Assembly: GCA_023515725.1 (NCBI GenBank) | Contig: JALDTO010000237.1 | Span: 124,001 to 188,000 of the forward strand | Reading direction: 5' to 3' | DNA: 64,000 nucleotides | Source of the DNA: Amoeboaphelidium protococcarum X5 | Taxonomy: Eukaryota; Fungi; Aphelidiomycota | Part shown: positions 27,727-42,423 of the stretch, piece after piece | How positions within the stretch are numbered: position 1 is the first letter of the stretch | Layout of the letters: each line of letters starts with the position of its first letter | Notes under the pieces: model-generated | Database searches by the model: none | The model's input: the letters and a program-made list of their open reading frames with translations, nothing else | What the model was told of the DNA's origin: nothing | Made by a program: the position numbers and the translations under genes

Positions 27727-27817
27727 TGCTCCCGGGCAGGATCGAACTGCCGACCTTCGCGTAACCAAATCTAACGGATTTATAAGCACGACGCTCTACC
27801 AGATAAGCTACAGGAGT
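27727..27817 (-). tRNA. tRNA-Ile(UAU) with 18-nt intron (27763-27780)
   Basis: Cloverleaf ACTCCTG-TA-GCTTATCTGGTAGAGC-G-TCGTG-CT-TAT-A[intron]A-CGCGA-AGGTC-GGCAGTTCGATCCTGCC-CGGGAGC-A gives a 73-nt mature tRNA. A T5 Pol III terminator lies 4 nt downstream. Confidence 0.93.
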
Positions 27818-28508
27818 CCATCAAATCACAAACTGTTAGCACACGCGTCGATCAAGTATCAACAACTGACTCTGTGGGGCTTAGTTGATCAACATTGTTT
27901 CAAGTGCGCGCCTCTCTCATCATTGACGTCTCGAATAGGCAAGTATCTGCAGTATATTTGCGCGCCACTTATGAACATTGATTTCTTCCACTTAACGTGT
28001 TAATAGAGTATTTATCTTATTAACATATTTTATCTTCCTGTACTTCTGTTGGTGTCTCTGTTTGACTCTTAATCTTTGTATATAGCTTCCCGTTTGTCCC
28101 TATTGTGTTTATAGTCTGTCCAAGAGTATCAAAACGGAATAGGCTATTTAAGATTTTAAACAAATTCTAAATTGTTTCTTTACTTCATCAGTTGCTCGGT
28201 AATTCATGCCTGCAAATAAAAAGCATCAGAATTCTTGTGTAGTTCGAGTGCGTTCTACGACGTGACGTTAATTCCAGTCGTGCCTTCTATGATTATCTGC
28301 ATAATATACCAAGACTTGCTTCATACCACAGAGCTGAAGTATTTTTTTGTAAATAATTGATTGACAGTGATTGGATCTTTATTTGAATTGTTTCAACCAG
28401 TCTATTTTTAAGCTGCGCCACTAATCTGCAGTCTGATTTGCCTTAAATTCTTATCCTCTTGTTTAAATAATACTCAGCATATACTTATCGTACAGTAGAC
28501 ATCGAACA

Positions 28509-30742
28509 ATGGATAGTAAAGGGAGAACTATTAAATTACCGTTTGATCAATATGTATAACGCCTGCCCCATGATTACCGCCAAAATTTACTGGAATTTTG
28601 TTCAAATCTATGGCGCCTTATTCCAGAGGCTGGTGCGTTGGTAATGATCTATATATACGCGTTTTTGGAAAATGCTGCCATTACTGCTGTTTGCCCCGAT
28701 TTATCTGCTACTACTATTATAGATATCTTCTTATCTTGCGGTGTATAAGTAGATAAAGTGTAGAAAGGCGATACGAGTCCGTCCAGTTGTTGGATAAGGA
28801 GTGATCTACACAGAAATGCTTGGAATCAGTGGTTGGTTGCACGTGATATCAACATACCATATGCGTAGATCGCGATAGCTGGAACAAAAGTGTTTATATC
28901 ATTGCATAATAGTATGTTAAGCAGTGTATGGTTTAGATAGACGTCAACATCTACAATAGGGTGCGTACCTACTTTGTTAACTCAGTCTAACGAGTGGATA
29001 CCGAGAAAGCCGTTATACTTCAGGATTTGGTAGGCTTCTGGCTTGAGAAAATTAATAATAAAACTATGGTCTCCCTGGATGCTCACAACATTGTCCAGTT
29101 CCTAGATGCCGACAACGCTAACGAACTTGAAGATTTAGTAAGACAGCTCAACCAGATCTACTTAACTATATTCAATAAGGCCAGTATGACAACGAGCAAT
29201 GAACTTTTTACGGGCGTTAATAGCAGTAACTGGTAAACTTATCTGCGGCTGATGCACTTTATCCAATAGTTTTATCATGCAAATGGTTTGGCAATGTTCA
29301 ATATCTGTCCGGATTTCAAGTTGGCGCCATTTCACATAACTCTTAGCAAAACTAACGCCAAGACCACCAAAGTTTTTGAAGCAACTGGGGAGCAGAGTCT
29401 GGATAACTTTGCGTCAATTTTTGACTCGCTAGTGGTAGAGAAGTATTAGAGGTATGACGAGTTCTATACCGACATGTATTCTGTATCCGTCCCTTGTCAT
29501 ACAAAATCAAAAGAGGATGCTAGTGGCTAGTAGATTACACAGCCAGCTTAAAGCAGCAGTTCTACTAGTTAAGCAAGAGAGCCGGCCCTTGCCCCGGGAT
29601 CGAAATTCAAGGCACGTAGGCTGAAGAACCAGAAGACTTGGTGACATTCGAGCTATCGACTAGTAAGAGGAGACTTAGAAGTGATACCTCTGCCAACCCA
29701 TAGAAAAGGTAAAGAAAGTCTCTGCAGTAGATGTATCGCCAAGGAGATGATTGTCCAGGTGACCCAAGTGATTTGGAATTCGCACAAGGCTAATAAGAAT
29801 TGGTAATTCATTTGGGAGATTATTAGCTTTGGGAAGAGGATGATCAAAATGAGATTTCCGATGAACTTGAGGACTTACTCGACGAGATTCCTGATGATGA
29901 GGAGATAGGTGATGCTCCAGAACAGGAATATAGAAGAGATCACAGGTGGCTTAATAATCCAGCATTTCCTCAGATTGATATTACTGATCCTGATCTGACT
30001 TTCGTGGGAATAGATCCTGGAGTGGTGTTCAGGGCGACTAGCTGCATTATCAAGGCTTCTCCTGGAAATGATGTACTGCAAACTTTGCAATCTTCTGACA
30101 AGAACGCAATCCCGTCTGTGATGCTGAATTCATAAGAGTTTCGAGCTAGAATCAGGGCGGAATTGAGCTAATAAGACAGAGAGCTATCAGAGGATGTATT
30201 TGCGCAGCCAAAATATTGCTTCAATGTGGAGATGTGCAAGCGTAAATCTGCCAATGCAGCTGTAGTTACTAATGAACGAACGCCCCCTATATCTGGATCT
30301 CTCCGTTCAGAAGGCCAAGTTCACGAAATATCTTTTAAAGGGAGTTATCTTAAAAGAGTATGCTGCAAGACTGGTTGGCCTTAATTCGTTTGACGACAGC
30401 AGAAAGAAGAAGATTGTGGTGTTTTGGGGAAGTTCAGGGATAAAGAGATTTGGACGTGTCTTTCTTCCGGGTGGTAGATATCATCCGGCTTGCAAGTAGT
30501 TGCTCCAATATGTTCAGCAGATGGCAACTGTATACGTTAGCCATGAGAAAGGTACGTCTAATCATTGCAGTGACTGTGAATAGAGGGTCGTTAGAAGGAG
30601 AACTGCAGAGCGAGACGTTGTTACTTGCGGAAACTGCCATTTGGTGATAAATGGAGATGTGAATGCTGCAATCAATATCATTAAAATTGGACTCACTATG
30701 GCTACTAACCATGGTATGTTTCCGATGTAGTTCACGCTATGA
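28509..30742 (+). mobile_element. Fanzor1-like (TnpB/Cas12-family) RNA-guided endonuclease gene; three frame transitions (introns and/or frameshifts)
   Basis: With TAR=Gln: FNICP..(H)ITL and FYTDMYSVSV (WED-like), RuvC-I FVGIDPG (about 30001-30021), IVVFWG, RuvC-II SHEKGTS, zinc finger CSDC...CGNC, RuvC-III GDVNAAINI, and TGA at 30740-30742. Confidence 0.88.
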
Positions 30743-30847: not shown

Positions 30848-31348
30848 TGCGTTTCAACTGCCAGAACGCAGTTTTTGATCGCGACACGTCAGACACTCTC
30901 TACTTTATCAGTAAATTTGGCGATAATTCTCACGGGACTTGAGGTTCTTGAGGCCAACCGGTCAAGCAGTTGTCACCGTCGATCAACTTCTCGTGAGTTG
31001 TTTGTACGAGTCGCTGTGACCCACCGGCCTTAAAGAATGTTTCGTTGCATCGTGAAGCCGAAGATTTCCAGTGTCTGAGAGGAAAAGTTTTAAATCCGAT
31101 CACGAACTGGTAAAATCGTCAAAGGCCTAACGGTGTAAAGGCTCAAGTCTGACACTCCCTAACGGGTGGTAAGGACCGTTTATGTCTGTTGTAACGAACT
31201 ATATGCGGCAGATCCAGGTTCAGTGATGTTCATTGCTTGCTGTTCGTGCATTCTGATGAATATAAAGCGTCATTCCCCGGCCTTTGGGCCAAACCCGGTG
31301 TCATTGCGGGCTTTCTAGTGGCCACTTAAGTGTGGTAAGCTCGACGCC
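30848..31348 (+). ncRNA. Structured non-coding region downstream of Fanzor, candidate omegaRNA (3' module about 31273-31348)
   Basis: Nested complementary pairs 30869-81/31097-109, 30889-97/31070-78, 30916-21/31057-62, 30930-35/31050-55 and 30944-55/31026-38. The 3' module has a GGCC-TTTG-GGCC hairpin and GGTGTC/GACGCC, CGGGCTT/AAGCTCG and GCCAC/GTGGT stems. Confidence 0.6.
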
Positions 31349-31562
31349 TTTTTAAAATCTACAGTCCCTTGTCGACAAGGCCAAGTGGATGAACCATTTA
31401 TAATGAGCCTTCTGCAGCAGAGTAAGTAAAAGAAGAGACGAAGAGATGATTTCGAAAGCTCCAAGTCAAAACAATTCTTGTTTCGTTCTCCGTTTTCTTC
31501 TTTCCCGTTGCAGAAAGTAAAAGGAACGATAATCACTTAGCACAGTACTATTGTTGGAGAAA

Positions 31563-41278: not shown

Positions 41279-42423
41279 CCGTCCGCGCAAAAATTTTGAC
41301 CGGTTTGCGAAAAAACGAAACATTGATTATAAATTTATTATCACTCAATAACCTGTATGACCTCCAGATTTTTGCACACATATAGCAAGACGTCTTTACG
41401 CACTCTCAGCTAATTTTTCAGCTAATTCGAGCTCCAGATTGTTCCATATGTCGAATATCTGGTCAATCAGCTCATTTTTCGATGAAGGCCCACCGTATTT
41501 TTTTCCCTCCTAGCTTTTATAATAGCCCAAAGATTGTCAATAGGATTAAGATCCAGCGATTGCGGCGGCCAGGGCATTGTCTAGAGGTCGATTTGTTCAA
41601 AATACTCGGTAACGACCTTCGACTTATGGCAGGGGGCGTTATCCTGCATAAACACCATATCTTCGCCCAAATCTTTTTCCAATGCCTTCTTAGCAGGTAG
41701 TAGATTGTGCTTAATGGTTTTCATGTATTATTCACTATCCATTGTCCCATCAACCACCACTAAAGGTCCAAATCCGTACTTGCTAAAGCAGCCCCAAAAC
41801 ATGACGCTGAATCCACCCTATTAAAACTTGAAGTTTCGGACTCTGAGGGATCTATACGGCCATTTCTGGTCCAGCATACAATATCCTGGTTGTTGGGAGC
41901 CTGCTTTACCAAAGTTTCATCGGACCATATGACCAAGTCCCAGCGCCAATCCTCTTTAGAGAGGTATTCCTTCGCAAATTGAAATCTCTTTTATTGGTTT
42001 ACACTATTCATGAACTGTCTCTATACCATAATGCGACATTCGAAGCCTAAATCCTTCATCATATTGCGTATAGTGGACGGGCTGGGAACCTCAGCATCTT
42101 GGAAACCAGCCTACTTCAGAAGAGCAGGGATGTCTCTATAGGCAGTATACTTATTTTGAGATAGTATTGACTTTAGAGCACGCGTCAGATTTCCTTATTA
42201 GAGGCGTTTACTGATGATTGGCTTTTCGCCCAAATCAGCCTCCTCGCGCAATCTCTTGTATTTACTCCGCACTGCTTCACCCGATTTTTCTAGAAGAAAT
42301 CCTATATCCTTCCAAGATAGCTCAAAATTCCATGCCCGTTCAATAATATCTATTTCCTGCTATGTGTAAGTCATGATTCGTTTTCAAGAAAAGTGAGACC
42401 GGTCAAAATTTTTGCGCGGACGG
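41279..42423 (-). mobile_element. Tc1/mariner (IS630-Tc1) DNA transposon, 1145 bp, 26-bp perfect TIRs, TA target duplication
   Basis: CCGTCCGCGCAAAAATTTTGACCGGT at 41279-41304 and its exact reverse complement at 42398-42423, flanked by TA at 41277-78 and 42424-25. Confidence 0.97.
41345..42374 (-). pseudogene. Tc1-like transposase with one frameshift (about 41820-41880), DD34D triad
   Basis: IWSDET, VMFWGCF, FMQDNAPCH and WPPQSLDLNPIDNLW. The ATG-to-TGA span is 1030 nt (3n+1), with the frame change between WSDET and GGFSVMFWG. Confidence 0.9.

Follow-up and report, generated by a model that had tools for sequence, protein, structure and literature searches.

A broken Fanzor, probably of the Fanzor1 type, in the aphelid Amoeboaphelidium protococcarum and the long candidate omegaRNA that follows it

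The Fanzor1 nucleases described so far, such as SpuFz1, GtFz1 and PpFz1, are encoded by nuclear genes of eukaryotes. They carry a long N-terminus, a catalytic triad composed of the DPG aspartate, an alternative glutamate and a second aspartate, and a zinc finger of four cysteines, and their open reading frame (ORF) is followed on its 3' side by a conserved non-coding block and then by a variable flank (PMC3627910, PMC10711439, PMC11423790). The known omegaRNAs of Fanzor1 are 75-150 nt long (PMC11423790), and their guide is a variable 3' segment of 14-15 nt (PMC13565253). Some Fanzor1 genes are found in one-ended non-autonomous elements (CRe-1,2,3 Helitron2 and MCi-2), which have a sharp conserved 3' end, a variable or truncated 5' end and a T-run at the junction (PMC3627910).

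In this work, we examine a locus of Amoeboaphelidium protococcarum X5 that lies in a window of 64,000 nucleotides (positions 124,001 to 188,000 of contig JALDTO010000237.1), and that shares with Fanzor1 the kind of gene, the traits of the protein and the conserved 3' block with its variable flank, but has a candidate RNA of ~400 nt. It also differs from Fanzor1 in belonging to an aphelid clade with no relative detected outside the species, in a basic and acidic insert of ~150 amino acids, in a DPG-to-E spacing of 174 and in a genetic code where TAA and TAG (TAR) mean glutamine; the element was found with neither TIR, TSD nor transposase of its own, and the window copy is broken. It has the sharp 3' end, the variable or truncated 5' end and the T-run in common with the one-ended elements, but where these have TTTT on their 5' side and TSDs or ATIRs, the aphelid T-run comes after the 3' end and neither kind of repeat was found. 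The DPG and the alternative glutamate are also shared with Fanzor2 and the IS607 TnpB (ApmFz2, PDB 9b0l), but the window protein is much longer, no serine recombinase is encoded nearby, and the IS607_TnpB profile scores weakly (E 0.006). Finally, Cas12f and bacterial TnpB have the RuvC domain and the TNB zinc finger in common with it and give the best Foldseek and NCBIfam matches, whereas the aphelid protein has a rearranged RuvC-II, no CRISPR array and a eukaryotic host. Fanzor2 RNAs are longer than those of Fanzor1.

The gene is composed of the following parts:

28509-30742, plus strand: Fanzor pseudogene, 743 table-6 codons split among four frame segments, from the ATG at 28509 to the TGA at 30740-30742 (nr model KAI3631983.1)
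28509-28871, 28874-29590, 29593-30282 and 30284-30742, plus strand: the frame segments, of 121, 239, 230 and 153 codons, which align to the single-frame C244 copy at 63, 47, 54 and 71% identity
29500-29960 (approximate bounds), plus strand: low-complexity insert before RuvC-I, Ser/Gln-rich, with basic (NLS-like) and acidic tracts
30013-30021, plus strand: DPG with the RuvC-I catalytic Asp (DVG, DLG or DPG in the paralogs)
30545-30658, plus strand: RuvC-II Glu, CxxC-x16-CxxC zinc finger and RuvC-III Asp, from motif reading and PF07282

A first-pass annotation, made from the letters of the window alone, had read a Fanzor here, and this identification holds. Indeed, the motifs follow one another along the plus strand in the right order, with FNICP at ~29297, FYTDMYS at ~29462, DPG at 30013, the glutamate at 30545, the finger at 30566-30637 and the last aspartate at 30656, so that all three catalytic residues are present. 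The criterion applied was a CxxC-x(12-18)-CxxC finger with the RuvC-III Asp 4-8 residues later; here the Asp comes after six residues, and the glutamate sits six residues ahead of the first CxxC. As described in PMC10711439, the published fingerprint combines the DPG with a glutamate that precedes the zinc finger by six residues. With this fingerprint complete, the window gene is, by its sequence, a Fanzor. RuvC-I has drifted from DPG in most paralogs, several of which have DVG or DLG, and the low-complexity insert is present in all the close ones; its basic tract could act as an NLS. The table-6 translation and profile search proposed by the first-pass annotation gave, besides the 743-codon frame, a PF07282 score of 40.7 bits in a six-frame search and of 38.2 bits for KAI3631983.1, for a cut-off of 26.3 bits. 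This score, together with the 47-71% identity of the segments along the paralog, means that the motif set is not due to chance.

Protein searches were queried with sequence pieces and database proteins. The language-model features of the Atlas connect the C-terminal half to TNB clusters of eukaryotes and NCLDV (0.96, 193-202 shared features). A structure model of the C-terminal half of a paralog, with a pLDDT of only 59, has AsCas12f as its best Foldseek match (E 2.7e-4) and the same TNB cluster as its best Atlas shape match (TM 0.38); by VIA, RNase H-like folds match with Z values that reach 5.2, and a longer model has a pLDDT of only 40, at which the WED-like label given to FNICP and FYTDMYS by the first-pass annotation stays tentative. 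The feature, Foldseek and shape matches agree, weakly, with the Fanzor identity; the two models (pLDDT 59 and 40) matched no solved Fanzor1 structure, and searches of PDB sequences returned weak TnpB and Cas12f matches only. For the N-terminal part, DUF8286 clusters from NCLDV and from Mucoromycota come up at 0.90, a slight resemblance that is a lead only. With a threshold of E<0.001, neither 1.84 billion representatives nor 5.8 billion clusters gave a relative outside the species, and none appeared in viral contigs or, by the RNA pattern, in metagenome contigs; all of these were word-based searches, to which distant kin can escape. That the protein is long and that no serine recombinase gene lies in the flanks makes it likely that this is a Fanzor1 rather than a Fanzor2. 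The long N-terminus on which the first reading had based its Fanzor1 fit is real, and membership of the Fanzor1 clade is likely, as judged from these traits rather than from a tree.

The reassignment of UAR to glutamine was already known in A. protococcarum (PMC5304391), and the locus obeys it. The long ORFs of the window show up only in table 6, the genome encodes tRNA-Gln with the anticodons TTA and CTA, and 12 of the 26 aligned TAR codons face a glutamine in the C244 copy, against a background of 5% (p=2e-9); TAR and CAR are exchanged in both directions between the window copy and this paralog. The Fanzor frame contains 28 in-frame TAA/TAG codons (13+15) and no internal TGA, and its longest stop-free piece in the standard code is ~102 aa, which bears out the claim that more than 20 such codons leave nothing but fragments. 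The TAR share of its glutamine codons is 53% (28/53), against 57% in the neighbouring host genes; TAR use is therefore not unusually heavy, and it lends nothing to the idea that heavy TAR use implies a long residence. The residence itself is supported by the saturated synonymous sites and the homeolog-level divergence detailed below. The recoding matters little, being the normal code of the host for a gene that is already in nr. This code, the host genes on both sides and the homeologous and second-strain copies indicate a eukaryotic origin and not a contamination.

The first-pass annotation had suggested looking for other copies from which an intact consensus could be built. The family occupies ~11 loci of the genome, but none of the copies read is an intact member of the clade. 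Among the close copies, C179 is at the homeologous site, truncated in 5' and inverted relative to its flanks, C244 is full length with one internal TGA, C158 is frameshifted and C90 is decayed; C212, C207, C155/C146, C98, C69 and C233 are more distant. Between the window copy and C244, pS is 0.79, i.e. synonymous sites are saturated, for a pN of 0.28. Between the window copy and its homeolog, dS is 0.21 (0.24-0.28 in host genes) and dN 0.07, and the resulting dN/dS of 0.34 is below neutral even with transition bias allowed (kappa 3.2, p=0.0003). Saturated synonymous sites, a host-like homeolog dS and a sub-neutral dN/dS point to a long period of moderate selection and a recent break. The family is old and species-specific.

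Several copies deserve to be described for themselves. The 5'-truncated inverted copy (L047:1995-3296 in C179, L050 and L052) is found in one subgenome of the source and in both FD95 homeologs. It keeps a 430-aa frame with a dN/dS of 0.28 between strains, a constraint that is marginal branch by branch (p ~0.06); the catalytic Glu has become Gln in C179, and all three acidic residues are kept in FD95 L050. The homeologous Fanzors C244:467458-469803 (L032) and C158 (L033:5530-7776) are 93-100% identical at their ends and only 50-65% identical over a sharply delimited stretch of 1.65 kb in the middle, so that one of the two middles stems from a diverged paralog, by replacement or by descent, which could reflect break-induced conversion.

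As for mobility, no terminal repeat or target duplication (TIR/ATIR/TSD) was found at the Fanzor copies, between which homology begins at the ATG. A Crypton-type tyrosine recombinase was rejected as the carrier, as it lies inside the RNA of C244 and C98 and is missing from C158 and the window, and so was an LTR element, as solo LTRs lie on either side of the copies or are missing. The Crypton-like ORFs that interrupt the 3' RNA of C244 and C98 (L032:1996-4743 and L035:3254-5908) are near-identical, and each of the contigs of L032 and L035 resembles one half of a C158 homeolog that was rearranged.

On its 5' side, the window copy has the following neighbours:

27727-27817, minus strand: tRNA-Ile(TAT) gene containing an intron, at 692 bp from the ATG of the Fanzor
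27834-28131, plus strand: solo LTR of 298 bp (TG...CA) of the tRNA-adjacent Ty3/gypsy type, a neighbour and not a part of the Fanzor
28198-28360, minus strand: 3' fragment of a second Fanzor family, 86% identical to the C142 copy, marking no more than the left boundary of homology

A tRNA gene lies within 1 kb at 5 of 11 independent Fanzor loci (p ~0.0002-0.02, for assumed densities). Since LTR elements use the same tRNA-adjacent sites, this adjacency may be explained by tolerance rather than by targeting. The solo LTR lies 16 bp upstream of the tRNA-Ile gene and has dozens of copies, many of them adjoining tRNA genes. Some come in pairs 5.2 kb apart, RT and integrase genes adjoin them in FD95, and by these sequence traits the LTR belongs to a tRNA-targeting Ty3-like element. 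The fragment of the second family is head to head with the window Fanzor; its C142 copy (L036:5747-7069) has a 440-codon frame, with a 130-bp repeat inserted upstream.

The most informative part of the locus is the RNA on the 3' side, which lies outside the coordinates first annotated:

30867-30892, plus strand: conserved motif upstream of the RNA, a candidate promoter element or 5' part of the RNA
30952-31348, plus strand: conserved multi-hairpin RNA, a candidate long omegaRNA scaffold, from conservation, fold and covariance
31349-31353, plus strand: T-tract closing the RNA block in every undecayed copy, after which similarity stops

The RNA block is 98.3% identical between homeologs, more than the ORF (91%), the spacer (92%) or the flank (86%), and its identity to loci with saturated ORFs still amounts to 86-89%. 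It folds better than shuffled sequences (z -2.3). At every locus read, it is downstream of a Fanzor, on the same strand, at 0.2-1.9 kb from the stop. A covariance model built on the last 200 nt of the close copies only recovered the RNA of the C212 clade, whose Fanzor is 39% identical, in the same downstream position and strand (26.5 bits, E ~2e-5). With C212 added, the pairs with double changes rise from 2 to 13 (~11 new, with pairing kept), a gain supplied mostly by one diverged sequence, in an alignment fitted to the model; folded by itself, the C212 sequence forms the same four elements. In the undecayed copies, the final helix is followed by T4-5, and similarity stops there in four independent flanks. 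Where the ORF is decayed in one FD95 homeolog, the RNA beside it has been lost at the neutral rate as well, as would be expected of the cargo of an element. Contigs of a freshwater metatranscriptome cover the RNA block and pieces of the ORF, which is no proof of transcription. No Rfam family matched the RNA block at E<=5 or 10, and family searches indicate that it is neither RNase P RNA nor MRP. Compared by eye, it fits neither a hammerhead, nor a group I core, nor a telomerase template. Elsewhere in the genome, C98:1147722-1148018 (plus strand) weakly matches nuclear RNase P RNA over its full length (20.1 bits, below the cut-off), and no match to RNase MRP was found.

By analogy with the known systems, the RNA block (~400 nt, 30952-31353) would most likely be an omegaRNA, about three times as long as those known for Fanzor1, possibly transcribed separately. 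We find it rather probable that the locus is a broken old element of the Fanzor1 type. Its intact ancestor would have made a RuvC/zinc-finger protein of ~745 aa in the TAR=Gln code of the host, with an activity expected from its family. This protein would have bound the downstream RNA as its omegaRNA scaffold, with the variable bases past the last helix as the guide, and cut TAM-flanked DNA. As in other Fanzor and TnpB systems, cutting may have favoured the retention of the element itself through break repair and gene conversion. Without transposase or recognisable ends, the element would have stayed in place for long, often next to tRNA genes, and moderate purifying selection would have acted on it, until the window copy took three single-base frameshifts. 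Against this stand the weakness of the structure models, which match no solved Fanzor1, the short known omegaRNAs, the distance of the RNA from the stop, a further copy of the RNA on C150 near which no Fanzor match was detected, and a covariation signal that depends mostly on one sequence. As no intact copy of the clade was seen, its active state can only be presumed. Moreover, the T4-5 directly after the last helix resembles a Pol III terminator, in which case no 3' guide would remain.

This last point leads to a second explanation, to which we give a minor but real chance. The upstream motif would be a promoter from which Pol III makes an RNA of 330-480 nt that stops at the T-tract. The clade, transposase-free and largely stationary, would then work without a 3' variable guide, either by some other guiding logic (internal, or by the 5' segment) or with no guide at all, in a domesticated or repurposed RNP of the host near tRNA genes. 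It would account for the upstream motif, of which 21 nt are identical in the distant C212-type locus, for the invariant end of helix and T-tract, for a module that stays intact where insertions part the RNA from the ORF (by ~0.95 kb in C158 and 1.9 kb in C212), for the conserved frame of the 5'-truncated copies and for the drift of RuvC-I. However, a preference for T-rich targets would yield the same T-tract, the constraint on the truncated copies is marginal, and the RNA has decayed in L055.

Less likely still, the RNA could be an unrelated Pol III RNA, of the host or of a selfish kind, which just happens to occupy the same tRNA-adjacent islands as the relics of Fanzors. The Fanzor would then be an ordinary, decayed passenger of a transposon, and its real omegaRNA a short piece or lost. 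The C150 copy speaks for this, as does the fact that such islands also gather LTRs and the second Fanzor family, and no such RNA was found in the more distant Fanzor subfamilies. On the other hand, strand and order are the same at all loci read, the divergence of the RNA follows that of the protein, the family searches cited above matched it to no Rfam family and to neither RNase P nor MRP, and the 7-mer that resembles a telomere template is not conserved.

At the DNA level, the window copy itself is a pseudogene with three single-base frameshifts. One nucleotide is missing near ~28872 relative to C244, one is missing at 29591 relative to C179, and one is extra at 30283. Illumina contigs from the source sample cross the first and third breaks with zero differences, which rules out an assembly error there; at the second, they reach past by 4 nt only. 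The three frame changes that had led the first-pass annotation to suspect an inactive copy are thus mapped, and inactivity is probable. That the gene is nevertheless live, with introns removing all three breaks as the NCBI gene model has it, is very improbable and we reject such introns: the model does join the segments into 560 aa, with frame-restoring GT-AG pairs near every break, but pairs of this kind are expected by chance, the modelled introns cut out FYTD-Y-S and the PKYCF segment, which are conserved in all paralogs, the paralogs cross these positions with no intron, and every break is one single-base indel.

This gene model (MIR68_009819), a hypothetical protein in nr, uses the right code, guesses introns over the breaks and carries a precomputed PF07282 match. 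Both published surveys of Fanzors covered annotated eukaryotic proteins: in the parts of their texts that describe the searches, that of Yoon et al. started from PF07282 on nr in November 2022 (PMC10711439), and that of Jiang et al. used the annotated proteins of GenBank (PMC10530073). A model like KAI3631983.1 was therefore within their reach, if released in time, and the idea that the gene was hidden by its code and easily missed by standard-code surveys does not stand, as it passes the PF07282 filter. The protein is already in public databases, though unnamed; the value of the locus lies in a divergent clade of aphelid Fanzors with a long RNA supported by covariation. In the literature searched, which left the catalogue tables of the surveys aside, no paper joins Fanzor with Amoeboaphelidium or aphelids. 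This clade, for which no outside relative is detectable, extends Fanzors to the aphelids, the sister group of fungi. If its RNA ends at the T-tract, the layout of a scaffold followed by a 3' guide fails here, which bears on what Fanzors become after the loss of their transposon. The window copy is dead, and no candidate for a tool as it stands.

More broadly in this genome, the number of loci above the PF07282 cut-off is at least 36. Among them is a young multi-copy family (C154, C212, C13, C205, C244, C146, C200, C264 and C98), which may hold intact Fanzors. In the window itself, long overlapping ORFs occupy both strands at 284-2002, the one on the plus strand nearly devoid of TAA, TAG and CAA, and the start of a Tc1/mariner-like transposase is found at 41721-42383 on the minus strand, in a stretch of mobile DNA.
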